A stretch of 64,000 bases of DNA from Octopus sinensis (taxonomy: Eukaryota), in NCBI RefSeq assembly GCF_006345805.1, contig NC_043021.1:27652001-27716000 (forward strand). Reading direction: 5' to 3'. The notes beneath the pieces are model-generated. The model saw only the letters and a list, made by a program, of their open reading frames with translations, searched no databases and was not told the DNA's origin. The position numbers and the translations under genes were made by a program. Of the stretch, positions 5,108-63,184 are shown piece after piece. Within the stretch, counting starts at the first letter, position 1; each line of letters starts with the position of its first letter.

Positions 5108-6768
5108 CAACAATTGAGGGCAAAATTAATTATTATTATCAATTTCACCAAGTGTTCAGTATGCAAAGGGACCATTCAAGGCGAATTCAAATTATTAACA
5201 TTATATAAAAGGGCTTAGTAAAATAATTACTTTGCCGCATACTGAACTCATTAGAAATAGCAGCTAAAAAACTTTTTTAAGGCTATTTCTAATACTTAAA
5301 GAAAATCTCTCTCATATATAGTGTTTGCATAATTTAACTCACAAAAGTTTGGGGGTAATGACATCGAAAAAATCAATGCTAAGTTATTCGAGAACGTACG
5401 TTTCAAGATTAGTCAAAACAACATTTCTATCATCGGCTCGGAAATTCCTTGGTTTGGATTTGGAAACACTGAAAAAAAGAACATACCCTCTCGAAGATCT
5501 GCTCCCAACTACAGTGTCAACAAATTCAAAATAAGCAAGCGAAGAATCTCTGTTCTCCCCTTTCCACCAGCGTGGGTTAAAATCATCAAACTCTATGCTT
5601 ATTTCGGTAAAGTCCGAAGCATAATCAGAGGGAGATTAATTATAATTTCAACAATTGAGGGCAAAATTAATTAATTATTAATCAATTTCACCAAGTTTCA
5701 GTATGCAAAGGGACCATTCAAGGCGAATTCAAATTATTACATTATATAAAAGGGCTTAGTAAAATAAATTACTTTGCCGCATACTGAACTCATTAGAAAT
5801 AGCAGCTAAAAAACTTTTTTAAGGCTATTTCTAATACTTAAAGAAAATCTCTCATATATAGTGTTTGCATAATTTACTCACAAAAGTTTGGGGGTAATGA
5901 CATCGAAAAATCAAATGCTAAGGTTATTCGAGAACGTACGTTTCAAGATTAAGTCAAAACACATTTCTATCATCGCTCGGAAATTCCTTGGTTTGGATTT
6001 GGAAACACTGAAAATAAGAACATACCCTCTCGAAGATCTGCTCCCAACTAACAGTGTCAACAAATTCAAAATAAGCAAGCGAAGAATCTCTGTTCTCCCC
6101 TTCCACCAGCGTGGGTTAAAATCATCAAACTCTATGCTTATTTCGGTAAAGTCCGAAGCATTAATCAGAGGGAGATTAATTATAATTTCAACAATTGAGG
6201 GCAAAATTAATTAATTATTAATCAATTCACCAAGTGGTTCAGTATGCAAAGGGACCATTCAAGTTGCATACTGAACACTTGGTGAAATTGATTAATAATT
6301 AATTAATTTTGCCCTCAATTGTTGAAATTATAATTAATCTCCCTCTGATTAATGCTTCGGACTTTACCGAAATAAGCATAGAGTTTGATGATTTTAACCC
6401 ACGCTGGTGGAAAGGGGAGAACAGAGATTCTTCGCTTGCTTATTTTGAATTTGTTGACACTGTTAGTTGGGAGCAGATCTTCGAGAGGGTATGTTCTTAT
6501 TTTCAGTGTTTCCAAATCCAAACCAAGGAATTTCCGAGCCGATGATAGAAATGTTGTTTTGACTAATCTTGAAACGTACGTTCTCGAATAACCTTAGCAT
6601 TTGATTTTTCGATGTCATTACCCCCACCTTTTGTGAGTTAAATTATGCAAACACTATATATGAGAGAGTTTTCTTTAAGTATTAGAAATAGCCTTAAAAA
6701 AGTTTTTAGCTGCTATTTCTAATGAGTTCATATGCGGCAAAGTAATTTATTTTACTAAGCCCTTTATA
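5101..6768. repeat. ~541-bp unit in tandem (2.15 copies) followed by an inverted copy; PLE terminal-repeat-like
   Basis: Unit starts ATAATTTCAACAATTGAGGGC at 5101, 5642 and 6182. From 6264 the sequence is the reverse complement of ~5750-6250. Confidence 0.9.
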
Positions 6769-9378: not shown

Positions 9379-10608
9379 TTAGGTTGTCAAGAAAGTTCTT
9401 GCGGTTTTTAACCTTTAAATTCAGAAGCAGATATGTCGACCCAAACAAAACTTTATAAATCGAAAGAAACACCATCGAAACCAACACACTTTTGCCAACG
9501 CTAAACAAGTCTATTTATGCCAGTAGCATAAAAACCCTGCGTTCTTGCTGGTGATGAAGTCATTGAATACATATTTGGCATCGTCTTGGTTTTTGAAGCA
9601 TTTCTCACAAAGGAAGTTGTCAAGATGCTTGAAAAAGGGGTAGTCGGAAGGTCAAAGGTGTAGTGTGTATGGCAGATGAGGCAGAATTTCGTAGCCCAAT
9701 TCGTTCAACTTCTGCAGGGTCAGTTGTGCGACGTGCGGCCGAGCGTTGTCGTGGAGAAGAATTGGTCCTTTTCTATTGGCCAATGCTGTCTGTTGTGGGA
9801 GTTTCTCATGCATTTCATCCATTTGCTGACAGTACTTCTCCGCCGTAATGGTTTCGCCTGGATCCAAAAAGCTGTGATGGATGAGACCTGCCGCAGACCA
9901 CCGAAGAGTCACCACGACCTTCTTTTGGTGCAATTGTAGCTTCGTTGGCGTCCATTCACTGAGCTGAGCGTTGCCGCTTGTCGTAAAGAATCCACTTTTC
10001 ATCGCAAGTCACAATCCGGTCGAGAAAAGGGTCATTCTTGTTGCGTAAAAAAGGTTGTCGTTCAATTCGTGCGGCACCTATTTCTCAAGTATTTTTGTTT
10101 TTCCAATCTCTTTCAAGTGGTTGGAAATTGTTGTATAAATTATTTCTAATTCAGAAGCAAGCTCTCGAACAGTTGTGTGTGGATTGGCTTTGACTAAGGC
10201 TCTTAGTTGATCGTTGTCAACATCTGCTGGCTGACCACTACGCTTATCATCTTCAAGACTCTCGTCACCGCTACGAAATTTCTTCAACCACCGTTGTGCT
10301 GTTCGTTCATTAGTGATTCCTGAGTCAAACGCATCGTTGATATCGCGAGCTGATTCAGCTGTTTTTCGGCCTAGCTTGAACTGGAATAAGAAAATTGTGC
10401 GAATTTGCTTTTTGTCCATGTTGTATTCAACGTTCCGGAAAAAATGGCCTAATTATTCAAAAAGAAAAAGCGTTACACGATTAGACAGAGTGAAAAACGG
10501 GCTTTACAATGATATATAAATTGAAAGTAATTTAACGAAAATTAATTTGAAAATACATAATTGAAAACCAAAATAAAAAATTCCGTAAGAACTTTCTTGA
10601 CAACCTAA
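9379..10608 (-). mobile_element. full-length mariner transposon (Hsmar1-like), transposase disrupted
   Basis: TIR TTAGGTTGTCAAGAAAGTTCTT at 9379 with an inverted copy ending at 10608, and TA on both flanks. ORFs 10078-10419 (MDKKQIRTIFLFQFKLGRK... HTH) and 9652-10002 (...WSAAGLIHHSFL...ILLHDNARPHV) resemble Hsmar1/SETMAR transposase. Confidence 0.95.
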
Positions 10609-11904: not shown

Positions 11905-13130
11905 ATAAACCCAAATATACAGCATAAACCCAAATATACAGTTCACAATGGAATACAACCAAAAGGAGCTCCCGTTCTTGGATATACTAATTAAAAAAAT
12001 TAACCTTAAAATAGAAACAGACATTTTTTACAAAGCCACAGACGCCAAACAATACCTTCTTTTTAATTCATGCCACCCAAGACACACTAAAACAAACATC
12101 CCCTTCAACCTTGCAAGAAGGATATGCACAATAGTGTCAGAACAAAATACCAGGAACTTTAGACTGCAAGAACTCAAAAACACCCTAATTGACAGACATT
12201 ACCCAGCTCAACTCATAGAGGATGTGATCAGACGTGCAACAGAAATCAACATAGAAACTTTAAGAAAAGTTCAACACAACAACACACCTTTCCCGAAAAT
12301 ACTACCTTACATATCTACATACAACCCCAGAAACAAAGAAGCCTTCACCATCATCACCCAGAATTTACCAATACTTCATAAGGACCCCAAATTAAAGGAA
12401 ATTCTAAACATACACCAAATCATTAAAAGCTACAAACAACCTAAATCACTTAAAAAGATTCTCACAAAGGCAAAATTGTTTTCTGAAATTACGGATGCAA
12501 AAGTAAAAAAATGTGGTAGATCGAACTGTGCAATATGTCCAAACCTGCTAGAAGGATCAGAATTCCTCTTTAAAGGGACAGAAATTCAAGATCAAATCTA
12601 ACTTACTTGTGCCTCTGAAAACATAATTTATGTCATAAAATGCTCGGGCTGCCACCAAGACTACGTGGGATCCACGGGACTATCACTCAGACGTAGATGC
12701 ACACTGCATCGACAACAGTTTGCATTCCCAGAATACAGAATGATACCTTTTAGTGAGCACATTGAGAAATGCGCAAAGCAACTACTACCACAATTTTTAA
12801 TCTTTCCATTTTACCAATGTGCTATCGGATCATCAACACAAATTAGACTAAACAAGGAAACATTCTTCATTGAAAAGTACAAGCCCAGACTTAACCATTC
12901 TAACATACTGATACAGAGAAATTCACACCAAGGGAAAGGAAAAAAATTTAAGCGATTATCTCCCTTACACCGGAAGAAATCACTCATTACCTCCCCTTAT
13001 TTAGGTCTCTTTTAAACATAAACATAACGAAAACTCTGTTCAACATAAACATAACGTCGTAAGAAATTTGAAAAGCTAAACGCGAAACCGGTCTTTCTTC
13101 TAAACTATGTCATTGTAGAAAAAAATTTCT
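11905..13130 (+). mobile_element. 5'-truncated Penelope-like element (RT C-terminus plus GIY-YIG endonuclease), frameshifted
   Basis: INPNIQFTMEY..ELPFLDI...FYKATDAKQYLLFNSCHPRH, then CGRSNCAIC, then after a frameshift IIYVIKCSGCHQDYVGST..LRRR..LH...KETFFIEKYKPRLN. These match the PLE RT thumb, zinc linker and GIY-YIG. Confidence 0.9.
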
Positions 13131-13311
13131 AATATTCTTCAGACATACTGACTCAAATATATATTTTCTAACCTTTAAGCTTTCTGTAGTTTTTTCACTT
13201 TTTACTATTTTCTATATATTCAACCACGTGCTTTCACAAACCAACTATCTTATCTATCTATATATATATATACATATGTATATATGTATTATATACATAC
13301 ATACATACATG

Positions 13312-13344
<33 letters not shown>

Positions 13345-13347
<3 letters not shown>

Positions 13348-13778
13348 TCAGCAGTACAATTCTACCTGCAATGTTATATGGTAGTGAAACATGGGCTACC
13401 ACAAAGAGAGAAGAGCAAAGATTGGTAACGGCTCAAAGAGCCATGGAGAGGTCAATGCTTGGAATCTCGTTGAGAGGGCACATCAGTAGCGAGGTCATCA
13501 GAAAGAAGTTCGGCGTGAGGGATGTCATCGCAGAGTATACACGCAGCAAGTTTAGATGGGCTGGGCACGTCGCCCGGCTCTCCGATAATCGGTGGACCCG
13601 TGCGAGCGGAAACGACCACCTGGAAGGCCTCCACGACAGTGGAGTTACGATTTCAGGAGGACGATTGGGATCATGTGGATGAGAAAGGCGCGATCCAGGG
13701 AAGAGTGGACAGCGTGCTGTGACCAGCAGTGTCAAATGGACGCCCGACGGAGTGGTCGGTCAAGGTGATCAAGGTGAT
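13345..13778 (+). mobile_element. RTE-clade LINE 3' fragment
   Basis: ILPAMLYGSETWATTK...AQRAMERSMLGISL...WAGHVARLSDNRW is typical of the RTE C-terminus. It ends in a short AAGGTGAT repeat. Confidence 0.88.
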
Positions 13779-13998: not shown

Positions 13999-14050
<52 letters not shown>

Positions 14051-14135
14051 CTATATATATAAAGAGAAAAACAACTAGTACAAAATCTCTGAGCGATAAA
14101 TATGTAGTAACAGTACTGTACTACAGTACTCTTTG

Positions 14136-14478
14136 CCAACACGATGTGGCAGTCCCACGCAGGACGATGTTACTACTTCGACCCAGGAAAATATCTTTTC
14201 CAACTGGCTACCGACATATTATCTGTGTCCGCATACTGTGAGCAAGGGAGTATATTGTTCCCTTTCTAGCCTTAGCGGTATCTGTAGGGTAATTATTTAT
14301 GGATTATTTATGGATCATTTTCCTTCCTTGGTACAGAACAATCACCGCTTTTCATCCTGTACCGAGGAAGGCAAATAACCGAGAAACCATTGGTCGATGG
14401 GTATCGCTGGAAAAGATGTTTTTCTTGGGTTAAAAAAGAAGTAACATCGTCCTGCGTAGGACTGCCACATTGTGATGG
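14136..14478. mobile_element. MITE with ~70-bp terminal inverted repeats
   Basis: 14136-14204 (CCAACACGATGTGGCAGTCCCACGCAGGACGATGTTACT...) is inverted at 14407-14478. An extra internal hairpin lies at ~14323-14372. Confidence 0.8.
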
Positions 14479-14551
14479 ATAGCAAATACACTTTACTATG
14501 TGTATATATGTTTACACACACACACACACATGTATATATAATATATATATA

Positions 14552-14606
<55 letters not shown>

Positions 14607-14620
14607 ATATATATATAATG

Positions 14621-14830
14621 CACGAGCTGGTGCTGAAAAGTTCCTGGTTTTGAGTAAAAGAAAATACAGGACAATCACTAAATTATGATTTTATTCAACA
14701 TAATCCCCTCTCAGAGTCGCACACTTATTGCAGACGTCTTTCAGTTCTTCTAAGCTCTGTAAAAGAACCGCGAAGGCTGCACCTCCAAACAAGCAATTCG
14801 CGATACCATTAAAGCCAAGACTTCTTCAGC
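14621..14830 (-). mobile_element. mariner terminal fragment
   Basis: CGAG....GCTGAAAAGTTCC TIR-like start followed by ATTCAACATAATCCCCTCTCAG...CACACTTATTGCAG, which resembles a mariner transposase 3' end. Confidence 0.5.
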
Positions 14831-15205
14831 AATCACTTTTATATATATACACACACATATATATATAAATGTATTCTATATACAAATATACATATATAAA
14901 GTGATAGATATGTATTTAGATATTGGCATGCACAAGACAGGTATGGATGTGCGTGTGCCTGTATATAGCCCGGATATAGTGCGTGTCTGTGTGTATATAG
15001 TCCGGATACTTATTGATCAGACCACGAACACACACACACACATGTATATATATATATATATATATCTCGCTTATTGTTTCACGTACAAATGCTTAGATCA
15101 AACGAACATAAAACATAGCCACCAAAAATATAAAATCACAAAAGAACCAAAGAAAAACTAGACTAACAAGGTATATGCGTATATTCTATACATACGTACA
15201 TACAT

Positions 15206-15253
<48 letters not shown>

Positions 15254-15419
15254 CGTGACGTATTTTTGCCATTTCAATATGGCTAACCCCTAAGGGTGGA
15301 TGCTACTGTAGTTTTTAGCCCCAGGAGGACACACTCCTCCAGCTGGCCATAGAAACACTATCTGTGTCCTGTCAGTATTTGCAAAGGGAAGTCATCCTTC
15401 CCGTCTTCAACTTATGATA

Positions 15420-15464
15420 CACACGGACTAGAGTTTCGAGGTATTGACCTCTCGTCAGCGTGTG
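15420..15464 (-). ncRNA. type I hammerhead ribozyme, copy 1
   Basis: Minus strand: CACACG CUGACGA GAGGU-CAAU-ACCUC GAAA C-UCUA-G UC^CGUGUG. The catalytic core is complete, stem I is 6 bp, stem II is 5 bp and the triplet is GUC. Confidence 0.88.
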
Positions 15465-15772
15465 ACAATCATAGTTGTCGCCGAGAATTAGATTTCCTTC
15501 ACAAATACTTATACTTTTTCCAGCGCCCACTGTCGCTGATATTGAAAAAGTGAAATCAAACAATGATAAATATCAAAGTGAGTTATATACAGTAGCGGTA
15601 ACACATCGTGACGTATTTTTGCCATTTCAATATGGCTAACCCCTAAGGGTGGATGCTACTGTAGTTTTTAGCCCCAGGAGGACACACTCCTCCAGCTGGC
15701 CATAGAAACACTATCTGTGTCCTGTCAGTATTTGCAAAGGGAAGTCATCCTTCCCGTCTTCAACTTATGATA

Positions 15773-15817
15773 CACACGGACTCGAGTTTCGAGGTATTGA
15801 CCTCTCGTCAGCGTGTG
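15773..15817 (-). ncRNA. type I hammerhead ribozyme, copy 2
   Basis: As copy 1 but with palindromic stem III ACUCGAGU. Confidence 0.92.
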
Positions 15818-16125
15818 ACAATCATAGTTGTCGCCGAGAATTAGATTTCCTTCACAAATACTTATACTTTTTCCAGCGCCCACTGTCGCTGATATTGAAA
15901 AAGTGAAATCAAACAATGATAAATATCAAAGTGAGTTATATACAGTAGCGGTAACACATCGTGACGTATTTTTGCCATTTCAATATGGCTAACCCCTAAG
16001 GGTGGATGCTACTGTAGTTTTTAGCCCCAGGAGGACACACTCCTCCAGCTGGCCATAGAAACACTATCTGTGTCCTGTCAGTATTTGCAAAGGGAAGTCA
16101 TCCTTCCCGTCTTCAACTTATGATA

Positions 16126-16170
16126 CACACGGACTAGAGTTTCGAGGTATTGACCTCTCGTCAGCGTGTG
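16126..16170 (-). ncRNA. type I hammerhead ribozyme, copy 3
   Basis: Identical to copy 1 (stem III ACUCUAGU). Confidence 0.88.
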
Positions 16171-16476
16171 ACAATCATAGTTGTCGCCGAGAATTAGATT
16201 TCCTTCACAATACTTATACTTTTTCCAGCGCCCACTGTCGCTGATATTGAAAAAGTGAAATCAAACAATGATAAATATCAAAGTGAGTTATACAGTAGTA
16301 GCGGTAACACATCGTGACGTTTTTTGCCATTTCAATATGGCTAACCCCTAAGGGTGGATGCTACTGTAGTTTTTAGCCCCAGGAGGACACACTCCTCCAG
16401 CTGGCCATAGAAACACTATCTGTGTCCTGTCAGTATTGCAAAGGGAAGTCATCCTTCCCGTCTTCAACTTATGATA

Positions 16477-16521
16477 CACACGGACTCGAGTTTCGAGGTA
16501 TTGACCTCTCGTCAGCGTGTG
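16477..16521 (-). ncRNA. type I hammerhead ribozyme, copy 4
   Basis: Identical to copy 2 (stem III ACUCGAGU). Confidence 0.92.
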
Positions 16522-16679
16522 ACAATCATAGTTGTCGCCGAGAATTAGATTTCCTTCACAAATACTTATACTTTTTCCAGCGCCCACTGTCGCTGATATT
16601 GAAAAAGTGAAATCAAACAATGATAAATATCAAAGTGAGTTATACACAGTAGCGGTAACACATCGTGACGTATTTTTGC

Positions 16680-17599
16680 GTATATATATATATATATATA
16701 CACATACATATATATATATATGCGTATATATATATATATGTGTGTATATATATATATATATACACATACACATATATATATATATACATATATATACACA
16801 TACGCACATATATATGTGTGTGTATGTGTGTATGTATATATATATATATAATATATACACCTATACATATGTATATGCATCCCTACATATACGTATATAT
16901 ATGTATATATTTGTATATGATGCATGTACACACACACACACACACACATATGAAACATGCTTCTATGAACTTTTTTATGATGCCATTGAACTGAATCTAA
17001 CGAATGACGATCCTCGGCGAAAGGGTTTTATCCCCCAGTGGTGGCTTCCCGTTTCTTTTGAAATGTTTATGCATTCGTTACGATATACATACACTGCGCA
17101 GGCATATACTTGTTCCGGATTGTACTTGGCTATGGATATATGTTTGTGTGTGTATATAAACATATATATAGATATATATATAGATATATATAGATATATA
17201 AATACACGCATTCATACATATGTATACATATATACATGGATGCATAGACATATATACATACATATATATGTACATATATACACATAGATATATATGTATA
17301 TATACATACACACACGCACATATAGGTACACACATTTATATATATATACATATACATACACATAAACGTATATATATATACATGGGTATGAATATATGTT
17401 TGTGTGTGTATATAAACATAAACATATATATATATATACACACAAACATATATATATATGTGTATATATATATATATATGTGTATATATATAGACACACA
17501 TATATACATGCATGCGTATATGTTTTATATATATATATATTTACATACATACATGCATATGTATACATATATACATGGATACATATACATTATATATAT

Positions 17600-17630
<31 letters not shown>

Positions 17631-17960
17631 ACATACATACATATAGATACATATGTATGTATACATACACAGACACACATATAGGTACACACCCACCCAT
17701 ACACAAACGCAAGCACACACACACACACACACACCACACACATATATATATACATACACACAAACGTGTATTTATATATATATATATATATAGTGAGAGA
17801 CACATGTCTATGTATATTTATATGCGTACATATGTATGTACTCCTGTGTACATATGCGTACAGATGAATATATTTATATTCATATATATATATATATACT
17901 TATATGCACATTCGACTATACATTCTCATATACACCTGTTCATATGTAATAGCCTATGTG
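16680..17960. repeat. (TA)n/(CA)n/(TACA)n microsatellite field
   Basis: Direct reading. It accounts for the YI/HT-rich pseudo-ORFs. Confidence 0.9.
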
Positions 17961-18419
17961 TATACACGCGCAAGTATTCCTAGCTACTGCGTTTTTTTAT
18001 TATTCCGTATTACTAAGTTCGTTTTTATGACTAAGTCACATGTGAATATCTGTTTGTATGCATTTCTACATGCATACACATGTACGTATCTCAGCGATAT
18101 TAGATACCTGATGACCATGCGACCATGTGATACGCTGATACGCTCCATCATCAGCAGTCAGCGTGAGTTTTGAGGTATTATTGGATTTGAGGGAAAGGTT
18201 TCTGAGAAGTAGCTTATCCGTTTGATTCTCGCTAATCGAATCTCACAAAAGGCTTTTAGAACCCACCTCAAAGAAAACACCAGCTACGTTTATCTCTGCA
18301 GTGTTCTTTAATCATTGTTGACAAATTTGAAGTCAAAGTAACATCTTTCATCAGTTCGCTGATTCAAGGATTTCAACTATGATGAACGGATACACTTTTT
18401 TTGCTGCCTTTGCGATTAC

Positions 18420-36090: not shown

Positions 36091-37055
36091 TCATCATCAT
36101 CATTGTTCGACAGTGGTCGAGACAATGGAATTTACCATGCTACGCCAGACTTCACGGTCCATCATGGCATTACGGAGGTCCTGTTGCTGGATGTCTGTAT
36201 CCCTGGAGATTACATCAGGGTAGGAGAGTGTGCGCCCTCTGGTATTGCGAGTAGATGGCTTCCAGAGGAGAAGAGTAGAAATTACTTCTTTTTCAGCTCT
36301 ACAACAATGTCCAGCAAACTGGACTCTCCTACCTTTCACAAGAGATGACACAGGTGGTAGTTTCCCATATATTTGCATTTTGGTTGGATGGCGCTTCCAC
36401 GAGATGGCGCTTCCACGAGAGATTTTGAGCTCTCATAAGGAGGCGAGTGTAGGTTCCATCCAACCGCCTCTCAAGCTTCTTTGATAACGTCCAGGTTTCT
36501 GAGCCATATAGTAGGATTGGTTCGACTGTGGCTTTGAAGATTTCAAGTTTGAAGTCTCCACTTAGATTTGATGACCAGATCATATGCATGTCATTACAGT
36601 CTGACCAGGCCATACCCTTTCTAGTTAGAAAGTCTTTTCCAGATGATGATATGTATGACCCAAGATATTTGTAATCAGAAACCATATTTAAGGGCGCATT
36701 GTTGAGAGTATGGATGATGCAATCACTGTTGGACAGGCACTTGTTTATGTATTCAGTTTTGGCCTCATTGAGGTAAAGACCTACACAATTTGAGGCTTGT
36801 TCAAGAGATTGTAAAAGAGACTGGGCATTGGAGAGAGAATCACTGATAAGAGCGATGTCGTCAGCAAAGTCGGTGTCTGTCAAGTACTCAGCTGGGTGTC
36901 TGGAACTTCTTCTTGGTTTTATTTCAAAGCCCTTGCCAGAGATGGTATCAACTGACATACGTAGCACATAATCAACAACAATGATGAAAAGAAATGGGGC
37001 GAGTGTGTCTCCCTGCAGTATTCCGGCTCTGATTGAGAAAGATGATGTTGTACTG
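36091..37055 (-). mobile_element. 5'-truncated RTE-X-like LINE with (TGA)n tail and 11-bp TSD
   Basis: GILQGDTLAPFLFIIVVDYVLR, TDFADDIAL, YKYLGSYI, LLYGSETWTL and RRVQFAGHC motifs. A 16-bp duplication near 36388-36419 shifts the frame. The TSD TTGTAAGCCCA is at 36080-36090 and 37056-37066. Confidence 0.92.
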
Positions 37056-39789: not shown

Positions 39790-40626
39790 TAGAGTTTTAG
39801 GTAAATAAGGAGATTCTCACTGATACCTATGCACACATGTATACATACATACACACACATACAAACATATATACATATACATACACAGATACATACACAC
39901 ACATATATATACATATATATACACTTACACATACACATACATATACATATCTACACATACACATATATGTATACATACACACACTCACATGCATACACGT
40001 ATACACACATGTATATATACACACACGACCTCACATACATATACGCACAGAAAAATATATATACACATACACACACATACTCACATACACGCATACACAC
40101 ACATATCCACACACACACATGCACACACAGCACACTAGTCCCTATATACACATATATACACATACACACACATATACACACACATACATACATATACATA
40201 CATGTATATATATACATATGTGTACCTATGCAAACCTACACATACACACATATATATACACATACAAATACAGACCCATTCCCTAATTTTAATTTTATTA
40301 TCTTCGTTTATTACTTTTGTTATCTTTGGCCGCTTGGTCACAAACATCTTGGCTATGACAGCCAGTCCATTTATCTGTCTACTGGAAAACAAGCACTCAT
40401 TCACTCACGCACACTCTTTAGCACGTACTCTCACTCATTCGTACACTCATACACGTACACGCACGCACGCGTTATATTCATACATACATCCATCTACATA
40501 CATTCACGTATATACACATACGTACGCGTACCTACAGATTTATGTCTACACTCTTAGAAGGCTAGTCTATATATATACACCAATAAATATAAATACACAC
40601 ACATACATATACACCTACATACAAAT

Positions 40627-40667
<41 letters not shown>

Positions 40668-41337
40668 CATATATATATATACACATATATACACATACAC
40701 ACATATACACACACATACGCATACACACACATATACATATATATACACTACACGCACATACACATGTACATGCGTACCCATACACACACACACACACACG
40801 CGCATCCATATATACACATAAGTACACACATGCGTAAAAGTATACATATATCTATGCTTACACATACACACACACACACGTGCCTCCTTATATTTATACT
40901 TACATGCATACTCAAAAAATAAGTAAATAGTAAAATATATATACGCGCAGTTATTCGTACATGCATACTCAAAAAATAAATAATAAATATTAAGTATATG
41001 TACGTGCAGTTACCTATTATATAGACGGATACATACATACAAACTTACACACTATATATTTATATATATATATATATATATATACATATACATACATATA
41101 TACACATACACATACACATACATATATACATACATATATATATACACACACACACATACACATACATATATACATATATATACATACTTACACACATGTA
41201 CATATAAATACACACATAGATAACTCTACGTACCTACATATGCATAAACACACGAGCGTACGCGCATATGTACATATACACATACACATACACACGCATA
41301 TATATACATACATACATACACATACACACATGTGAAT

Positions 41338-41370
<33 letters not shown>

Positions 41371-41385
41371 CACATACATACACAT

Positions 41386-41431
<46 letters not shown>

Positions 41432-41701
41432 ATATATATATATACATATACACACATATACACATATATCTACACACACACACACATACATACACACATA
41501 CATACACATATACATACATATACACACACATATACACATATACATATACATATACACATACACACACATATATACATGTGTGCAAACATACATACATTCT
41601 CATACAAGCAGACACACTTACATTTACATATATACACACACTTACACACATATATACATACACATATACATACATACATACATACATACGTATATGCATA
41701 C

Positions 41702-41736
<35 letters not shown>

Positions 41737-41832
41737 CATACATACATACACATACACATACCGATACATATATATACACACATATACATATACACATGCA
41801 CATACCTATATCTCTACATACTCGCATATACG

Positions 41833-41890
<58 letters not shown>

Positions 41891-42270
41891 TACATATACA
41901 CACATACATATACCTATATACATGTATATATACACACACACACATATATACACATCTACATATATATATATATACATATATATATATGCATATATTTATA
42001 TAATGAGAGACACCTACAGACGCTAACGCAGATAGGAATAATATTATTTACACAGACTTACTGCCGCACAAATACGAGCCTCAAGGGACGTATTTGTGTC
42101 CATTACATAAACATGCTCGCACACACGTTCATACTGAGAGGCAAATATATATGTGTATGTATGTATGTAACCCTATGTGTGTATGTGTGTGTGTATGTTT
42201 GAGTATGCGTGTGTATACTTATACATATATGTATGTACGTATATATATATATATATATATACATATATAT
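39790..42270. repeat. long (CA)n/(TA)n/(TACA)n compound microsatellite field
   Basis: Direct reading. All long ORFs here are HT/YI repeats. Confidence 0.9.
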
Positions 42271-44530: not shown

Positions 44531-44659
44531 CACCGTCGTCGTTTACGAGAGAGTGTCAGCTTGTTGTGTTTTTACGGTTATACCGAGATTTCGAATTTTA
44601 TTTAGTAAATAAAATAATTTGCTGGGCGAAATTCTCATCAGTAACCGCGCCATAACATT

Positions 44660-50734: not shown

Positions 50735-51953
50735 TATTAGTCTTTTTCTACATAGGAACCACTCAGTCACACATTTCTCCCATCGTTTGATGCAACTCTG
50801 GAGACCGTTTTTGTAGAAGACCCCAGCTTGGTCCTCCAACCACGACATGACTTCAGAAATCAAGGCTGCATCATCTGGGAAACGCTTTCCTTTCAAAAAC
50901 AACTTCACGGCTAGGAAGAGGTGAAAATCAGAGGGTGCAAGGTCAGGAGAGTAGGGGGAGGGGGGAGGAGTTCATAGCCGCACGCCTGTGCTTCTGATCT
51001 GGCGACACACGAGTTGTAGACCGGAGCGTTGTTCTGCAGGAGGAGGATGCCTTTGCTGATCTTGCCCCGCCTCTTGATTTTGATAGCTTCTCTTAATTTC
51101 CTCAAAAGTGAAGCATAACAGGCTCCTATAATTGTGGTACCCTTTGCCAGGAAATCTGTCATCACTACTCCGTTCTGGTCCCAGAAGACTGTGAGCATGA
51201 CCTTGCCAGTGGAGGGCTGCACCCTTGCCTTCTTTGGAGGAGGTGAGTCACGGAGCTTCCACTGCATTGACTGGGCTTTGGTCTCTGGATCATAGTGATG
51301 GACCCAGGTTTAATCCCGTGTAATCAGTCTTTTGAAAAATTTTGACTCATCTTCTTGGCACATCTCCAAATTCATCCTCGAGCACTCAACGCGTTCTTGC
51401 TTCTGGAAAGGTGTGAGCAACCTGGGAATCCATCTGGCAGACACCTTTTGCATATGCAAATGGTCATGAATGATAATTTCCACAGACCCGGTACTAAACT
51501 TGACCTCATGGGCTATTTGCCGAATAGTTATGCGTCGATCTTCCAAAATGGCAGCCTCAACTTGACGGGCAGATGCCTCATCAATGGCAGAAGGGGGGCG
51601 ACCAGATCTGGGAGCTGTTTCCACAGAGTTCCAACCATGTTTGAATTCACGATGCCAGCGTTTTACAAGGTCATATGATGGGGCATCATCACCATAAGTT
51701 ACTTTCATTTCATCAAAAGTCTCCCGTGGTGTGCGTCCTTTCAAATACAAAAACCGCATCACTGCTCGACACTCAACAGGCTCCATTTCACCCTTGACTC
51801 AGTTCAAACACCCTTATATCAGAAACCACAATTAGTTCAGAGCTGTAATTTGCCACCTAATCTATAGAGATATAAATAATTGCACATGTAAATTTTCAGC
51901 TAGATCAAACAACTGCAAGTGGGTCAGAGGCATTACTTATTGAACGCCCCTCG
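50735..51953 (-). mobile_element. mariner transposon (irritans-like), frameshifted, one TIR visible
   Basis: ORF 51310-51786 (HTH, KVSARWIPRLLT), ORF 50911-51267 (GKVMLTVFWD..., LLQNNAP), then RWEKCV. The TIR TA-CGAGGGGCGTTCAATAAGT is at 51953 on the minus strand. Confidence 0.92.
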
Positions 51954-57579: not shown

Positions 57580-59716
57580 GAATTTATGCGCGCAAAGTAA
57601 AATCACCAATGACTTTGCAATGAACGCTGCAACCACTTGTAGTAACAGCCCTGTCACCAACACCACCACTAGCAAGAACAACAAAGAGACTACTGCTGTT
57701 ACCACCACCGCCTTCACCACCACCACCACCACCGCCGCCACATCATCCACTACCTCAACTATCAACAACAACAACAATAACAATGACAACAAAAATAAAA
57801 ATTGCACCACCATTTCGACATCTGCTGCCACGGCTGTCTCTTCTGCCACTGACACCACCACCAACAACAAAAACAACAATAACAACAACAACAATTCCGT
57901 TTAGACCTGTTTTACTCCAACAACAAGAACTGAAGGGAATAAACAAAAGACTGTGACCACCAAACAAATTGACAAAAGCTGCTTGAATACAGGGATAAAC
58001 CATGCAAGTAATTTTCCACCCCTTCCTACTTGCACAATCAAACCAAACACACCGATTTTACCAACTGCAGCCAACAACAACATCACCACCATCAACAACA
58101 ATAACAAAACAACAACAAATTTCGCCGAGGCGATAAAAGAAAAAAAGACAACAGTATATTTTACTGCACAACAAATAAAAGACACGAACATTTTAATAAC
58201 GGAAGTAGATGGTATAGTAAAAATAAACATACCACAAGAAATATTAGAAGATGAAAAAAAAAAGAACAATTATTTATAAAATAATTCATAAGAAAACAAA
58301 AAGTCCAGAGAAGGCTAACACAAGCAAAATAGAAAAATGCTTGAAACCCATCTGGAACTACAAAGAGTATGTGACCTGGTGGAACAAGTTCGCACACATA
58401 CAAGTGGTCTTCCACACTGAAGAGTTAGCAAGACGTTTCTCAACGCTAACTCTTCATTCAGATGAACTGACATTAATACCAAGCTACCGTGGACAGAAAG
58501 TGACTAAGATCACTTTAAACAATGTCCCAAAAATAGCTAACAATCTATGGCTAGTAAAGGCCTTATGTGTGAAAATGGAAGTTTTCACAATTTTACAAAC
58601 CACGGTCACGGAGCATAAAAACTGGGTGGGAAAAAAAGTAGAATTTCTACTACATATAAACCAAGAGGACATAAAGAAAATACCCACCCAGATATGTGTA
58701 TCAGAAGACCACAAGTTGTATGTGGTCGTCGATGGCAGAAGACCACGTTGCTACATATGCGGCAGTGAGCAACACCTAAAAAAAGATTGCAAATCTGCCG
58801 CAAGAAAACAACAGCAACAACAACAGCAGCCGGAAAAAACAAATAAACCAGCTGTACTACCCACACCACGTTTTGCACGAACAGGACTAATCACAGAAAA
58901 TCAACAAAAAACAAACCTCACCAACCAAACAACCACACCAACTGCACCAAGAACAGAAGCAACACCACCAACAACAACAACCAAGAATAAACCAACTCCC
59001 AAACCAAGGACATCTGCCAAAAAGACACTCATCGAAAATGAAGAAACAATTACTACTCCAAATCCCCACAAAATTGACACCCCAAACAACACAACAATAC
59101 CTATAATCACTCAAACACAAAATACCCACACCCCACCTCCAAAACCGCATACACCACAACCTAACGCTCACCAACCAACACCAACAACAAAATCAACACA
59201 GTCTACAATAGACCCCAATATTTTCCCTCTTCCAAGCTCTGATTCTTCTGATTTTTCATTAGACGAAGAAGACACAGAAGATTGGAAAATAGCCACAGGG
59301 GGGAGAAGAAAAAGGGGAAAAAAAGAAAAGAAAAGATAACAAACAAAGCAGGAAGATTCACCACTCCCGAAACAAAAACATCCACAGAAAACAAACACAT
59401 CAACACAAACACACCATCATCAAGCCCCCCAACATTGTTGACAGCCATAAACACAAACAACCACGACCTAATGGAACACATTAGGTCAAACACCAACATA
59501 ACTGAAAACGATATAAAAACAAGTAACCACCCACGCACAACACCACCACAACACATTAAAATAATACACGTAACACAGAACACATACAGCACCCTGAAAT
59601 CTCTTTACCCTGATGCAGTAGGGAAATTTCAAAAGTATTCATCAAAGAAACTATACAAAACCCTCATAGAAGAAGACTGTGAGGGGAAAGACAAAGGACT
59701 TTCGAACAACAAGTAA
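57580..59716 (+). pseudogene. Tx1 ORF1 (gag-like, CCHC zinc knuckle), frameshifted
   Basis: RPRCYICGSEQHLKKDC lies in ORF 58251-59339. Thr/Asn/Pro-rich low-complexity flanks are in adjacent frames. The start position is uncertain. Confidence 0.75.
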
Positions 59717-59784
59717 CCTTTTCTCTCCCTCTTTCCTTTTTTGCACTTTCTTTTCGTGTGTAAAACACGATTTTTTATCGGAAC

Positions 59785-62700
59785 ATGCTCAGAATAGGCA
59801 GTATAAATGTACGTGGCTTGGGGTCGCCTTGGAAACAAGGCTACCTGTTAAATGACATCAAGTCACTAAATCTGAATATCATAGCCATCAGTGAGACCAG
59901 ACTCCACAGCTTGCGGGCACTCCAGCACAGTTTCGGTACACATTTCAACATTTATTTTTCTCCGTGTCTACCGAGAATGGGCGGAGGTTGCACCGCGGTG
60001 CTTCTCCGGAAGAGTCTGGATCTCAAAGTAAGAGTAATTTTCCTAGACCCGGAGGGTAGGCTGGTCGTTTTGGATGTCGATGGCAGCAATGAGTGTGCTT
60101 TTCGACTGATAGCAGTTTATGCTCCGTCCTTAACGGGCCGACCAGATTTCTTTCGACGTCTAGAGTCCTTCATGGGAACTTCTCATCCTTTATTTTTAGT
60201 GGGGGATTGGAATGCCACCCTGGACACGCATCTAGACTACGTGGGCAGAGATAGCAATAGAAGGGGATGCAAATGCCTCAAAGACCTGCTCAGACGTTTC
60301 CAACTGTCTGACAGGTACCGACTGGACCACCCGAATGTGCCAATGTGGACATGGAGTAACCGCATCGGGTCGTCCAGATCATACTTAGAGTATTTTGTAG
60401 GACAATAGATAAAAATAGTGTAGGTTGTCCACAATTTCATATAGTCAGTTACACAGATCACAATTTTGTGACTTGTACAATTGACTTAGATAAGACACAT
60501 AGGCAGGGTCCTGGTTACTAGAAACTGAACGTGTCTTTTACAGCACGACAGGTTTACAGGGACCGGATCAGCACATTAGTTAAGAGAGCTTTGACGGGTA
60601 CCATCATCAACAACAGATGGTGGTATGCCCTAAAAAAAGCAATTAAAGCAGAATCAGTCAGATACAGTAAAGCCCTAGCATTAGACCAAAATAGAATAGA
60701 GGGAGAATTAGTTAAGGTTTTAGAAGAGGCACTTAGAACTGGCATCGCGTCCAACGTGCTGGCGGCGAGATTGGCCCTCGACAAACACCTCAACGCCAAA
60801 CACGAGGGATGCGTTGTCAGAGCTAGGATGCGTGCTCTGAGGAACGAAGGAGTTGGAGCCGCCCAAGAGGCCCGAGTGGTGGAGACGCAACGAGGCAACA
60901 GAGCCACCATCAAGTCTCTTATAGATGAACAGGGTCGCGAATTGCTCGAGCCTAAAAGATGTGTGGGGCTTTTCAACAACACTTCACCCAACTGTTTGGG
61001 ACAAGTAGTGAGTCAGAACGCAGAGTGAACTTTAGTGCCTACCTGCATGCCTTGCCACGACTCTCAGCAAGAGAGGTGGAGTCTTGTGAAAGGCCTATCA
61101 CAGCTGCGGACGTACAGGATGCTATGGTAGGCTGCGCGAGAGACAAGTCACCAGGCTTGGATGGTCTGCCCTACGAACTTTATTTTCATATGCCAGACTT
61201 GTTTGGAGGCGTCTTGGCAGCTGTCTACTGCAACTGGCAGCAGAACGGGAGTATTCCTGCTTTTGTAAAGCGAGGAGCAATGGCACTGATTAAGAAAGAC
61301 CCAAACAAGGGGGACGTCATAGATAATTTAAGGCCCATCACTCTGCTCAACGCAGATTTGAAAATTTTGGCCAAGGTGTTAGCCGAGAGGTTGGCGCTTG
61401 TCATCAAGAAACTAATCGACAAGGCGCAAGCATGCGCCGTGCTGGGTAGAAGTATTCATGACAACCTTCATCTGATGCGCTGCATCATAGATAGGGTAGT
61501 TAAGAATCCTGGCATGGGTGGGGCGCTGATCAATTTGGATCAATCAAAAGCTTTCGATAGGGTAGACTATCACTACTTGGAGGCTGTCCTCAAAGCGGCT
61601 GGTTTCGGTCCAGTTTTCCGCGGTTGGATCGCTGCCTTATACAGCGGCATCCGCTCAGTAGTTCGCGTAAATGGTCATCTATCCAGACCTTTTAACATCA
61701 TGCGTTCGGTTCGTCAGGGATGCCCCCTCTCATCGCTGCTGTATGTATTGACTCTTGAGCCACTACTGCGGAAACTGGCGACGCTGAGGGGCATCCCACG
61801 AGAGCTGGGATGCGGGAGGAGCGTGTCTGCATACGCGGATGACGTCACCGTCATAGTGTCGAGCTACGAGCACATCGAGCTTGTCAGCGAGACACTGAAA
61901 GAATACGAAGCGGTAACGGGAGCAAAAATTAACCGGGAAGTGGGCTTGCGGCTCGGCACCTGGAGAAGCAGGCCCATGCCGTCCAACAGCGTCTCCATCG
62001 TGGGACGCTGGACGGACGGACCGGTTAAATTGCTCGGGGTCTGGTTCGGTCCGGACCTCCAAATGGAGAAGAACTGGGGCGAGATAACGACTAGGGTGGC
62101 TACTCTCACCCAGAAATGGGCTGAGAGAAAGCTATCCCTAAAAGGTCAGGCGGAGGTGGCGAACGCGTACATCGCATCCGTCATCGAGCATCGTGCCTTG
62201 TCCCGACCCTACCATCACCAAACTGGAACGCATACTCTTCCGCTTCTTGTGGAAGGGCAACGTTCCGATGGTTAGGCGATCCATTTGCTGCCAACACCCG
62301 CTAAATGGAGGGCTGGGCATGCCGTGGTTGATGATGCGCAGACATGCGCTGAGACTGCGACATCTCCGGCGCTTCATAGACAACGGTGAACAGGTGTGGT
62401 CGCCTTTTGTGCGGCGCGCTTTTCCGCAGCTCGTCTCCTTGGACGAACTACAGTCATGGATCAAGCAGAGACCGAGGCTAGGCGAATGGCACCGCGAGTG
62501 TCGCGTTGCTCTCAAGCAACTCTGCCGTCCGGGATCGAACTTGTGCGACTCCATCACAACAAAGGCATTCTATAGAGGATTAGTGGAGGGGAGGTGCGAC
62601 GACGAACTCGGGCAGAGTCTGGGCGTCGACGAGGAACACCTGACCCGCCTGTTCAGGACAACTTTCGGGCCAGGACCTATGAACAATCACCAAAGATCCC

Positions 62701-63184
62701 TGGCCAGCAGTGCTATCGAGAAGCATTACCTGTTCGGGATAAGCTCTACAGACACGGTTCCAGACACACTGGACCGACTTGCCCCAGATGCGGTCAGAGC
62801 GACGAAACCGTTCTGCACGCACTCGTGCAATGTCCAACCATTTCAGACCTGTGGGCTTATGCCGAACGGCTGCTGTCACGTGTGGGACGAATCCGCCTAT
62901 CAGCCGAGTCTATCGTGAGAGTTGCTCCGCCTCCTTCCCTCAACCGGAAAGGCAAGGCAGTTTTCATCGTACTGGTGGCCATGGTGAAAGAATGTGTGTG
63001 GTGGACCCGAGCGAAAGGATTAGAGACAAACACTTACCTCTCTGGCCAATCGCTCATCAACTTGAAAAGGAAGGTGAGAATGGAGAGGGAAGTTTTGTCT
63101 CGCGAAAGATTAAAAAAAAGATGGGTGAATGTTGCAAAGATGATGCGTGCGAGTGACGAAACCATTTTGAGCATGATCCTGTAG
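59785..63184 (+). pseudogene. Tx1 ORF2 (APE endonuclease, reverse transcriptase, zinc finger), disrupted
   Basis: SINVRGL, ISETRL, GDWNA, KSPGLDGLPYE, RPITLLNAD.KILAK, DQSKAFDRV, RQGCPLS, AYADDV and CPRCGQSDETVLHALVQC. There are at least four frameshifts and a TAG in the GY(W)KLN motif near 60518. Confidence 0.92.

Follow-up and report, generated by a model that had tools for sequence, protein, structure and literature searches.

A probable non-LTR retrozyme with canonical type I hammerhead ribozymes in the genome of Octopus sinensis

The window analysed here is a 64-kb stretch (64,000 nucleotides) of Octopus sinensis contig NC_043021.1, and it contains a tandem array at 15252-16679 composed of four full 353-bp units and an 18-nt partial unit. 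The ribozyme-bearing (sense) strand of the array and of all its units is the minus strand. Read in the sense direction, the array begins with the partial unit (16662-16679), a terminal redundancy that blastn aligned with 100% identity to unit positions 1-18. The first full unit is unit 4 (16311-16661, 351 bp), followed by unit 3 (15958-16310), unit 2 (15605-15957), and finally unit 1 (15252-15604), each of 353 bp. Tandem Repeats Finder (TRF) reported a period of 353 and 4.1 copies (4.05 units) with 98% matches, 0% indels, and a score of 2791. The layout is purely head-to-tail with no LTRs, and the GC content of the unit is 42.5%.

The array is non-coding and has no credible ORF. Its longest ORFs encode 63 aa (from a TTG start) and 90 aa. 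No homologue of the former was found in a word-index homology search of 5.8 billion protein clusters, and the latter gave 0 matches in an exhaustive phmmer search of 1.84 billion representatives. Exact lookups of two further unit ORFs, of 38 aa and 54 aa, found nothing on record, and when Logan and ENA were searched via the unit ORFs, no contig with the unit came up. Within the 64-kb window, blastn detected no second copy; a 32-nt segment at 14199-14230 that matches the unit at 78% was set aside as chance level (E = 0.22). A tRNA- or SINE-like origin of the unit was rejected: ARAGORN found no tRNA in 14000-18000, and searches for A-box and B-box sequences returned no matches.

Pairwise identity among the four units is 98.3-99.7%, and only 7 alignment columns are variable; units 3 and 4 also differ in homopolymer length. 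This near-identity suggests either recent insertion or recent homogenisation. One of the variable sites falls in helix III of the ribozyme described below, where the variants alternate along the array: units 1 and 3 carry CUCUAG and units 2 and 4 carry CUCGAG. At a second site, units 1 and 2 share one state and units 3 and 4 the other, so that all four two-site combinations are represented. The presence of all four calls for recombination, gene conversion, or a dimer having been duplicated as DNA.

Microsatellite sequence borders the array on both sides. An (AT)14 tract lies on the left (15226-15253) and an imperfect (TA)n tract on the right (16681-16918), both seen by TRF and in the junction sequences; these tracts are the putative insertion target. 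Of all positions in the window, only 1.7% are flanked by (TA)n on either side, as the array is. Placement inside (TA)n is suggestive of an insertion event, and Penelope-like elements (PLEs) are reported to favour microsatellite targets (PMC8557442). A search for an enclosing element or a target-site duplication found neither, only microsatellite repeats around the array; a target-site duplication would be unreadable because the target is itself a microsatellite.

Each unit contains a type I hammerhead motif on the minus strand. The motif occupies 16477-16521 in unit 4, where cleavage is predicted after C17 at 16483/16482, and recurs at 16126-16170 in unit 3 (predicted cut 16132/16131), 15773-15817 in unit 2 (15779/15778), and 15420-15464 in unit 1 (15426/15425). 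All four units retain the core nucleotides C3 U4 G5 A6 C7 G8 A9, the G10.1-C11.1 pair, G12 A13 A14, the A15.1-U16.1 pair, and C17. Helix I (CACACG/CGUGUG) has 6 bp, and the open ends at this helix define type I topology. Helix II is formed by GAGGU/ACCUC and may be read either as 5 bp closed by CAAU or as 4 bp closed by UCAAUA. Helix III comprises only the 2 bp of AC/GU and a 4-nt loop. In units 2 and 4, helix III and its UCGA loop together form the palindrome ACUCGAGU, while the corresponding ACUCUAGU of units 1 and 3 is an imperfect palindrome.

The ribozyme domain extends beyond this motif. In unit 2, the extended domain (15767-15825, minus strand) has the 6-bp helix I, a UGU/U internal loop, and then a 5-bp AUGAU/AUCAU helix. 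The same arrangement occurs in every unit and appears in the minimum free energy (MFE) folds of both a 68-nt segment and the circular monomer. Loop 2, read as UCAAUA, resembles the Rfam consensus CAAAUA, and the UGU/U internal loop follows helix I. The hammerheads of mussel retrozymes lack most of the conserved loop 1/loop 2 nucleotides involved in the tertiary contact (PMC7229834).

In each of the four units, the Rfam model Hammerhead_1 (RF00163) aligned to the motif over its full length (positions 1-45 of 45); E values were 1e-5 to 1e-4 in a 1.5-kb search. The model consensus shares the zero-loop palindromic helix III with the motif and resembles it in loop 2. Scores were 32.2 bits for units 2 and 4 and 29.2 bits for units 1 and 3. 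As these fall short of the gathering score (34), the 64-kb window yields nothing under default Rfam annotation; targeted scans of the array region were needed to score the hammerheads. A permissive Rfam scan of the whole window was swamped by microRNA false positives on TA and CA microsatellites. A descriptor combining helices and core gave four matches in the 64-kb window, one in each unit and all inside the array. The same descriptor returned 0 matches in 300 dinucleotide shuffles of the window and 0 in 3000 shuffles of the unit. A further descriptor-level hammerhead look-alike at about 44575-44647 (minus strand) was rejected: it has a 30-nt AT-rich loop 2 and no match to a hammerhead model at E <= 1.

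These results bear out most of what the initial annotation had read from the DNA. TRF, the unit boundaries, and the ORF searches uphold its description of four tandem units of about 353 nt with an 18-nt redundancy, embedded in (TA)n and without a credible ORF. The minus-strand motif it wrote out, CACACG-CUGACGA-GAGGU(CAAU)ACCUC-GAA-ACUC[U/G]AGUC^CGUGUG, is found in four of four units, and its statement that every canonical core nucleotide is present agrees with both the sequence and the covariance-model alignment. The cleavage positions it predicted (15425/26, 15778/79, 16131/32, and 16482/83) follow directly from the sequence, and the local hairpins it listed (GGGAAG/CTTCCC, GGAG/CTCC, GACAA/TTGTC, and ACCC/GGGT) can be read there as well. 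The Infernal-type comparison it proposed gave the full-length RF00163 alignments in all four units, though under the gathering score.

One element of the initial annotation requires correction, namely the description of these ribozymes as minimal type I hammerheads. The minimal motifs are variants of PLEs and Terminons (PMC4209133, PMC7229834, PMC7761336); they have a helix II of 7-8 bp, a helix I of 4-5 bp, and an unpaired nucleotide between A9 and G10.1, and they lack helix III and loop 3 (PMC4209133). The canonical motif, which occurs in retrozymes and in the classical animal satellites, combines a 6-bp helix I with a helix II of about 4 bp (PMC4209133). Its helix III has 1-2 bp and a palindromic loop of 2-4 nt, and it is active as a dimer in tandem repeats (PMC4209133; PMC7761336). 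In the octopus array, helix II has 4-5 bp, helix I has 6 bp plus the extension, A9 directly precedes G10.1, and helix III and its loop are present. Judged by these helix lengths, the absence of the bulge, and the presence of helix III, the array ribozyme is a canonical metazoan type I hammerhead, a class that works as a dimer, and not the minimal variant.

Folding predictions are in keeping with dimeric action. With a helix III of only 2 bp closed by a 4-nt loop, a single ribozyme is expected to be weak, and the palindrome ACUCGAGU would favour the pairing of two. When two CUCGAG-variant ribozymes were cofolded, the predicted MFE structure, at -33.9 kcal/mol, was exactly a double hammerhead whose helix III has 8 bp; two separate monomers reach -29.0 kcal/mol. 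The double hammerhead is predicted at -27.9 kcal/mol for a mixed CUCGAG/CUCUAG pair and at -24.5 kcal/mol for a pair of CUCUAG ribozymes, and in neither case is it the MFE structure. CUCUAG in units 1 and 3 places mismatches in the dimer helix III, and half of the ribozymes may therefore be impaired. The hammerhead region on its own is predicted to prefer a non-catalytic rod (-14.5 kcal/mol) over the catalytic fold (-8.7 kcal/mol). This agrees with a proposal for viroid-type hammerhead RNAs, in which the monomeric circle would avoid self-cleavage (PMC4209133). As a circle, the monomer has an MFE of -112.4 kcal/mol compared with -83.7 +/- 5.0 kcal/mol for 200 dinucleotide shuffles (z = -5.7), and the plus-strand circle gives z = -4.3. 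The monomer RNA is thus predicted to be an unusually stable, highly self-paired circle.

Outside the array, a 5'-truncated PLE fragment lies on the plus strand at 11948-13015. It comprises the C-terminal HTH_animal region of the reverse transcriptase (RT), a CxxC linker, and a GIY-YIG nuclease. An in-frame stop is present at 12599-12601, and we judge the fragment to be dead. Its assignment is based on homologues, which carry PF26215, PF01541, and PF00078, and on pairwise alignment, in which the nuclease piece matches residues 265-340 of P0006 (E = 8e-22); Pfam did not directly recognise the two ORF pieces. A second copy of the fragment, with 92% DNA identity, is found in a Logan contig from a public sequencing run (L001). 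PLEs, a candidate class of autonomous partner, are present in the same genome. The PLE ORF lies on the strand opposite the ribozymes and 2.2 kb from the array. Between them are microsatellites and an unrelated LINE fragment (13284-13682). The best named homologues of LINE RT sequence are from Argonauta hians (67% identity) and Acanthosepion pharaonis (49%), as expected of a cephalopod and probably octopod genome; an exact lookup of the LINE ORF returned no record.

Comparisons of the array with PLE sequences gave no matches but say little about a PLE origin, since the loci compared are fragments that may lack terminal repeats. The unit has no similarity to the 3' region of the PLE, to L001, or to four PLE loci from related assemblies (L002, L004, L005, and L006). 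With the same caveat, no hammerhead was found in L001, L002, or L004-L006 with the descriptor, including a relaxed minimal-hammerhead version, nor in L001, L002, L004, or L006 with Rfam (E <= 0.5). Elsewhere, searches for the hammerhead DNA pattern gave 0 matches in viral contigs. The one match in metagenome contigs (L003) was rejected as an unrelated GC-rich bacterial or phage contig with a hammerhead of its own.

We consider the array likely to be a genomic non-LTR retrozyme, one of a class of small, non-coding retroelements, with its canonical type I hammerheads on the minus strand. Animal non-LTR retrozymes are 170-400 nt long with a GC content below 45-50%, and the mussel repeats measure 350-390 bp (PMC7229834); the 353-bp unit and its GC content both fall inside the published ranges. 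Li et al. (2026) recognise retrozymes by two or more successive units bearing a complete hammerhead and a hammerhead MFE below -5 kcal/mol (10.64898/2026.07.22.740005). The array has four consecutive units and a hammerhead MFE of -14.5 kcal/mol. The initial annotation had arrived at the same class, and its reading agrees with every sequence-level feature that could be tested: size, one hammerhead per unit, lack of coding capacity, GC content, lack of LTRs, the circle fold, and a nearby PLE.

The life cycle proposed for such elements can be mapped onto this locus. Minus-strand transcription of the array, probably by read-through, would yield a multimeric RNA, in which two ribozymes could pair via helix III to form a double hammerhead; the motif is present and its activity is presumed. 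The resulting monomer may be circularised by a host tRNA-type ligase of the RtcB class, as for other members of the family. The circle is predicted to adopt a compact and branched fold that holds the hammerhead in an alternative, inactive pairing. It could then be copied for more than one round by a reverse transcriptase, most plausibly that of a PLE, and the multimeric cDNA would be inserted at a (TA)n microsatellite. The distance from the two array ends to the nearest predicted cleavage sites is 197 nt and 174 nt, and the template was therefore not a cleaved linear monomer. In a published model, reverse transcription of a circular template yields cDNAs longer than one unit (PMC7761336), and the offset of the array ends fits this model. 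Copying of a circle over multiple rounds followed by insertion would explain an array of 4.05 units with ends off the cleavage site. Rolling-circle copying from just one circle would not be expected to give the alternating U/G pattern in helix III. The pattern is explained better by a dimer duplicated at the level of DNA, or by a template that was dimeric or heterogeneous.

The same pattern bears on the alternative that survives best, an immobile satellite or minisatellite in which a hammerhead-bearing sequence was amplified locally at the DNA level. The ribozyme would then be a passenger relic, and neither circular RNA nor present-day retrotransposition would be involved. The seed could have been, for instance, a solo retrozyme monomer or the terminal repeat of an old PLE, and the route unequal crossing-over or replication slippage. 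Alternation of CUCUAG and CUCGAG, together with the second site and the four combinations, points to exchange or duplication of DNA. Li et al. (2026) indeed propose that local amplification by unequal crossover follows insertion (10.64898/2026.07.22.740005). Restriction of the array to a single locus in the 64-kb window and the weakened dimer helix in half of the ribozymes also agree with this proposal. Against it, the catalytic core nucleotides and all helices are kept in four of four ribozymes, and units that are 98-100% identical have had little time for decay. The circular monomer is also far more structured than its shuffles (z = -5.7), and the position of the array inside (TA)n argues for an insertion event. 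Moreover, the proposal is about the growth of the array, and the element could be a retrozyme all the same. On balance, we regard an immobile satellite as unlikely.

A more ambitious version of the retrozyme interpretation would take the array as evidence of a very young, currently active cephalopod family. Here the CUCGAG ribozymes and their mismatched CUCUAG neighbours would bias formation of the double hammerhead toward every second unit. Processing would release largely 706-nt dimers rather than 353-nt monomers, and the 4.05-unit insertion in (TA)n would directly record how a PLE RT/GIY-YIG enzyme had reverse-transcribed such a circle in rolling-circle fashion. Taken jointly, these propositions strike us as improbable.

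It is very unlikely that the array is instead the terminal repeat (pseudo-LTR) region of a coding PLE and not an independent, non-autonomous element. Such a relationship is suggested by the PLE fragment at 11948-13015, with its RT C-terminus and GIY-YIG domain, only 2.2 kb away. Type I hammerheads are found in PLE pseudo-LTRs, and 5'-truncated copies in inverted orientation occur beside PLEs (PMC4209133, PMC8557442); in the view of Li et al. (2026), retrozymes stem from such pseudo-LTRs (10.64898/2026.07.22.740005). However, the PLE ORF is on the opposite strand, and the LINE fragment and microsatellites intervene. The unit resembles neither the PLE 3' region nor L001, L002, and L004-L006, and no hammerhead was detected in these five fragments by the descriptor or, in L001, L002, L004, and L006, by Rfam. 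The array ribozyme also lacks the hallmarks of the minimal motif (a long helix II, a bulge before 10.1, and an absent helix III), and four full head-to-tail units with no ORF between them are not a pseudo-LTR arrangement.

Despite Rfam scores under the gathering threshold and the one further descriptor-level look-alike at about 44575-44647 (minus strand), there is next to no likelihood that we are dealing with a chance hammerhead-like motif in an ordinary minisatellite, or with a piece of some viroid-like or deltavirus-like circular RNA that became integrated. The shuffling controls, with 0 descriptor matches in either the 300 windows or the 3000 units, effectively refute this reading. The array motifs align with the covariance model over its full length, and they match a hammerhead model at E <= 1 while the 44.6-kb look-alike does not. 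Deltavirus-like agents are larger and encode an antigen, whereas the unit is 353 nt with no ORF.

Among known systems, the probable octopus retrozyme is closest to the metazoan non-LTR retrozymes described by Cervera and de la Peña (2020; PMC7229834), in particular the families of Mytilus galloprovincialis (350-390 bp) and of the axolotl (331/353-nt circles). Shared features are repeats a few hundred bp long and arranged head to tail, a single type I hammerhead in each unit, the absence of ORFs and LTRs, low GC content, a compact self-paired circular monomer (here predicted), and PLEs in the same genome. The families are species-specific, and cephalopods are not among the taxa named in that study. 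Expression, circularity, and copy number have been shown for the coral, mussel, and axolotl retrozymes (PMC7229834), whereas the octopus array is known from the sequence of one locus.

The array ribozymes also resemble the classical satellite hammerheads that are the seeds behind RF00163, namely those of newt satellite 2, Schistosoma Sm-alpha, and the cave cricket pDo500. All share type I topology, a 6-bp helix I, a helix II of roughly 4 bp closed by an A-rich loop, and a palindromic helix III so short that the double-hammerhead dimer is required (Forster et al., 1988, as cited in PMC4209133 and PMC7761336). In contrast to these seeds, the helix I and helix II sequences of the array differ enough to bring its scores to 29-32 bits, under 34. 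Sm-alpha is furthermore a SINE-like element, while the array has no tRNA-like part.

Two other groups of hammerhead-bearing elements are more distant. The minimal hammerheads of PLEs and Terminons (Cervera and de la Peña, 2014, PMC4209133; Lünse et al., 2017, as cited in PMC7761336) are likewise type I, belong to the dimer-dependent class, and are associated with microsatellite-targeting retroelements; they flank an RT-EN ORF, which the array hammerheads do not. Like the array, plant LTR retrozymes are non-coding and non-autonomous, and they have hammerhead-processed circular RNA intermediates of the kind we infer for the array (PMC4918200). The plant elements are 600-1000 nt long with type III hammerheads in their LTRs, a PBS, and a PPT, and are mobilised by Ty3/Gypsy (PMC4918200). 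In contrast, the octopus element has type I hammerheads and is a pure tandem array without LTRs.

With respect to novelty, the initial annotation had suggested that the family was undescribed in cephalopods, a claim that stands in part. Type I hammerheads are on record in the giant squid genome, where 235 Hammerhead_1 loci were listed, but these were not analysed as retrozymes (PMC6962438). What is new is the taxon only, as the class has not been explicitly described in an octopus-like genome. The class, the ribozyme type, and the proposed life cycle have already been described, and our analysis adds a taxon, not a new principle. Since the array ribozymes fall just under the Rfam gathering threshold, similar families have probably been overlooked in counts made at that threshold, such as the 235 of the giant squid. 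The clean, near-identical four-unit locus has readable junctions and could be used for studies of insertion, including the microsatellite target, the offset of the ends, and the link to PLEs. If the array is expressed, it would extend ribozyme-made circular RNAs to the cephalopods, whose RNA biology draws wide interest.

The array at 15252–16679 was resolved as a head-to-tail repeat with a period of 353 bp (4.1 copies, 98% matches, 0 indels, score 2791; Tandem Repeats Finder). Anchoring on the unit start gave four units on the minus strand, u1 (15252–15604), u2 (15605–15957), u3 (15958–16310) and u4 (16311–16661), followed by an 18-nt partial unit (16662–16679) with 100% identity to the first 18 nt of the unit. 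Pairwise unit identity is 98.3–99.7%, with seven variable alignment columns, three of which are one-base deletions inside same-base runs and possibly assembly noise. Tandem Repeats Finder and the sequence place an (AT)14 microsatellite on the left (15226–15253) and a long imperfect (TA)n tract on the right (16681–16918). The longest ORFs of the array, one of 63 aa with a TTG start and one of 90 aa, had no homologues when 5.8 billion protein clusters were searched by word index and 1.84 billion representatives exhaustively with phmmer. The initial annotation had described this layout, the absence of a credible ORF and the (TA)n setting, and it was right in every detail that the repeat and ORF searches could check. 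Further unit copies, sought for covariation and copy number by ORF-based and hammerhead-pattern searches of sequence collections, were not retrieved. On the sense strand of u1 and u2, TATATAA precedes the hammerhead by about 120 nt (15583–15589 and 15936–15942, minus), changed to UGUAUAA in u3 and u4; it may be an internal promoter element of TATA type or a mere slippage-prone TA stretch.

All four units carry, on the minus strand, the motif CACACG CUGACGA GAGGU-CAAU-ACCUC GAA AC-UC[U/G]A-GU C^ CGUGUG. The hammerhead core is complete (C3 U4 G5 A6 C7 G8 A9, G10.1-C11.1, G12 A13 A14, A15.1-U16.1, C17). Our reading of the sequence predicts cleavage at 15425/26, 15778/79, 16131/32 and 16482/83, reproducing the motif and the four positions first proposed. 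At gathering thresholds, Rfam gave no matches in the window. The type I hammerhead model search that the initial annotation had suggested aligned all four units over the full length of Hammerhead_1 (RF00163, model positions 1–45/45) in a permissive scan, at 32.2 bits in u2 and u4 and 29.2 bits in u1 and u3, all under the gathering score of 34 (E = 1e-5 to 1e-4 in a 1.5-kb search). The RF00163 consensus depicts helix III as four pairs without a loop, a palindrome pairable only between two molecules, and the array motif shares this property; loop 2 is also similar (CAAAUA in the consensus, UCAAUA in the array). As an independent null, a core-plus-helices descriptor was compared with dinucleotide-preserving shuffles. 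It matched four times in the real window, always inside the array, and gave no matches in 300 shuffled 64-kb windows or 3000 shuffled units; the motif is thus not a chance occurrence.

Other candidates surfaced during these searches. Looser descriptor settings found a look-alike at ~44575–44647 (minus), CGGUUA-CUGAUGA-(6-bp stem, 30-nt AT-rich loop)-GAA-AUCUCGGUA-UAACCG, which we rejected as most likely a chance match, having no match to an Rfam hammerhead model at E ≤ 1. The TA/CA microsatellites (e.g. 6116–6397, 16680–17900, 39800–42200) gave well over 100 sub-threshold Rfam "microRNA" matches with small E-values (mir-297, mir-1277, mir-3149, MIR7533 and others); these are low-complexity artefacts that hide the genuine hammerhead matches in a permissive whole-window scan. 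A hammerhead-like motif, CUGAUGA-GAGGUGUAUACCUC-GAAAC..., also lies between two ORFs of a metagenome contig (Ga0307928_10182679, 579–650), an unrelated GC-rich bacterial or phage sequence picked up only through the likeness of its stem II to that of the array.

Two kinds of type I hammerhead have been distinguished in metazoans. The canonical motif has a 6-bp helix I, a 4-bp helix II and a helix III of 1–2 bp with a 2–4 nt palindromic loop; on its own it is inactive, but it works as a dimer within tandem repeats (Cervera & de la Pena 2014, PMC4209133). The minimal hammerhead of Penelope-like elements (PLEs) has a helix II of 7–8 bp, a helix I of 4–5 bp and an unpaired nucleotide before 10.1, and is without helix III (PMC4209133). 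In the array, helix I comprises 6 bp followed by a UGU/U internal loop and a 5-bp AUGAU/AUCAU extension, helix II has 4–5 bp, the bulge is absent, and helix III has 2 bp and a 4-nt loop that jointly form the palindrome ACUCGAGU. The make-up of all three helices thus resembles the canonical motif, whereas it differs from the PLE motif in its shorter helix II, longer helix I, missing bulge and present helix III. By its predicted helices, the array ribozyme is a canonical satellite/retrozyme-type hammerhead, and the label "minimal" given to it at first is incorrect (PMC4209133). The initial annotation had likewise attributed minimal hammerheads to retrozymes; in the literature, it is the canonical type I motif that is ascribed to non-LTR retrozymes, and the minimal motif is the one ascribed to PLEs and Terminons (Cervera & de la Pena 2020, PMC7229834; review PMC7761336). 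The canonical type therefore strengthens the retrozyme reading.

Predicted folding separates the two helix III/loop 3 variants, CUCUAG (u1, u3) and CUCGAG (u2, u4). For two CUCGAG copies, the predicted optimum is a double hammerhead with an 8-bp intermolecular helix III at -33.9 kcal/mol, compared with -29.0 kcal/mol for two separate monomers. The double hammerhead is not the predicted optimum for a mixed pair (-27.9 kcal/mol) or for two CUCUAG copies (-24.5 kcal/mol). Because it is energetically costlier and off-optimum for CUCUAG pairs, u1 and u3 may be poorer substrates. For the 45-nt hammerhead region alone, a non-catalytic rod (-14.5 kcal/mol) is predicted to be more stable than the catalytic fold (-8.7 kcal/mol). 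A similar behavior has been proposed for viroid-type hammerhead RNAs, in which multimers would favor cleavage and the completed monomeric circle would escape it (PMC4209133). Folded as a circle from cleavage site to cleavage site, the 353-nt monomer has an MFE of -112.4 kcal/mol versus -83.7 ± 5.0 kcal/mol for dinucleotide shuffles (z = -5.7; complementary strand, z = -4.3), matching the "highly self-paired" circles of non-LTR retrozymes (PMC7229834).

Animal non-LTR retrozymes have units of 170–400 nt, with mussel repeats of 350–390 bp (PMC7229834), a range that fits the 353-bp unit. The array is also like them in its consecutive type I hammerheads, its lack of coding capacity and LTRs, its GC content (42.5%), its stable predicted circle and its co-occurrence with a PLE (PMC7229834). 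Every sequence-level feature of the class was found, with scores short of the Rfam gathering value, and the array falls within the operational retrozyme definition of Li et al. 2026 (10.64898/2026.07.22.740005). The retrozyme interpretation put forward initially thus stands in its sequence-level features (PMC7229834) but not in its "minimal" ribozyme. We consider it highly probable that this is a retrozyme-type hammerhead array, and moderately likely that it is processed into circular RNA in vivo.

The repeat could instead be the terminal repeat of a PLE, a possibility raised in the initial annotation. A 5'-truncated PLE fragment (11948–13015, plus), identified from homologues and alignment, retains the RT C-terminal HTH_animal region, a CxxC linker and a GIY-YIG nuclease. 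Its ORFs (11948–12601 and 12665–13015) are in one frame split by an in-frame stop (12599–12601), and their homologues carry PF26215 (HTH_animal), PF01541 (GIY-YIG) and PF00078 (RVT_1). Alignment of the second ORF with a homologous protein (P0006) falls at the nuclease end of that protein (E = 8e-22), and a copy in Logan run SRR9105617 (contig L001) shows 92% DNA and 97% protein identity. The fragment lies on the strand opposite the ribozymes, 2.2 kb from the array, with microsatellites and an unrelated LINE fragment (RT C-terminal, 13284–13682, plus) between them. It has no sequence in common with the unit, and its 3' region yielded no hammerhead. Given its strand, distance, intervening elements and unrelated sequence, the array does not represent the terminal repeat of a PLE at this locus. 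The fragment does demonstrate that the autonomous element class proposed to mobilize retrozymes is present in this genome.

The surrounding window (GC about 35.5%) is eukaryotic and rich in (TA)n and (CA)n tracts, with transposon debris throughout. A largely intact LINE (58251–63184, plus; zf-CCHC, APE and RT domains) comprises ORF1 with a CCHC zinc knuckle (58251–59339), an APE endonuclease (59785–60408), an RT (60959–62275) and more C-terminal ORFs in shifted frames. It coincides with the GC maximum of the window (about 48–50%), and the best named homologues of its RT belong to Argonauta hians, at 67% identity, and to Acanthosepion pharaonis, at 49%. These homologues mark the host as a cephalopod, in all likelihood an octopod. 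Mariner/Tc1-type transposase fragments with an HTH_48 Mos1 domain occur at 9652–10419 (minus, with partial DDE) and 51310–51786 (minus), and another non-LTR RT C-terminal fragment at 36329–36967 (minus).

Both array junctions lie in (TA)n, found on both sides at only 1.7% of window positions. PLEs are reported to insert preferentially into microsatellites, and into (TA)n in the case of the Naiad clade (PMC8557442). No target-site duplication is readable at the junctions, the target being a microsatellite. In sense orientation, the array starts 197 nt upstream of the first predicted cleavage site and ends 174 nt past the last, which would rule out a cleaved linear monomer as the template. In the published model, circular RNA is reverse transcribed into cDNAs longer than one unit (PMC7761336), and this process would yield a 4.05-unit array with an arbitrary permutation point, as that model predicts. 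The same array would also result from an uncleaved multimeric transcript or from amplification at the DNA level. The loop 3 U/G variant alternates between neighboring units (plus strand A/C at 15430, 15783, 16136 and 16487), and a second variable site (15588, 15941, 16293 and 16645) separates u1 and u2 from u3 and u4, so that all four allele combinations occur across the four units. Simple copying of one circle cannot account for this pattern, which implies recombination, some duplication or gene conversion at the DNA level, or a template that was heterogeneous or dimeric.

In full-text literature searches, no description of retrozymes or of hammerhead repeats came up for octopus or any other cephalopod. 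For the giant squid, the genome paper lists 235 Hammerhead_1 loci from Rfam annotation (PMC6962438), and such repeats are reported "from molluscs to arthropods" (PMC7229834). The most useful features of this locus are the clean (TA)n junctions, the array ends offset from the cleavage site and the natural helix III variant pair; the family's score, just short of the Rfam threshold, is also useful. The array is a known kind of element in a new host group, and its presence in a mollusc is what specialists would anticipate.
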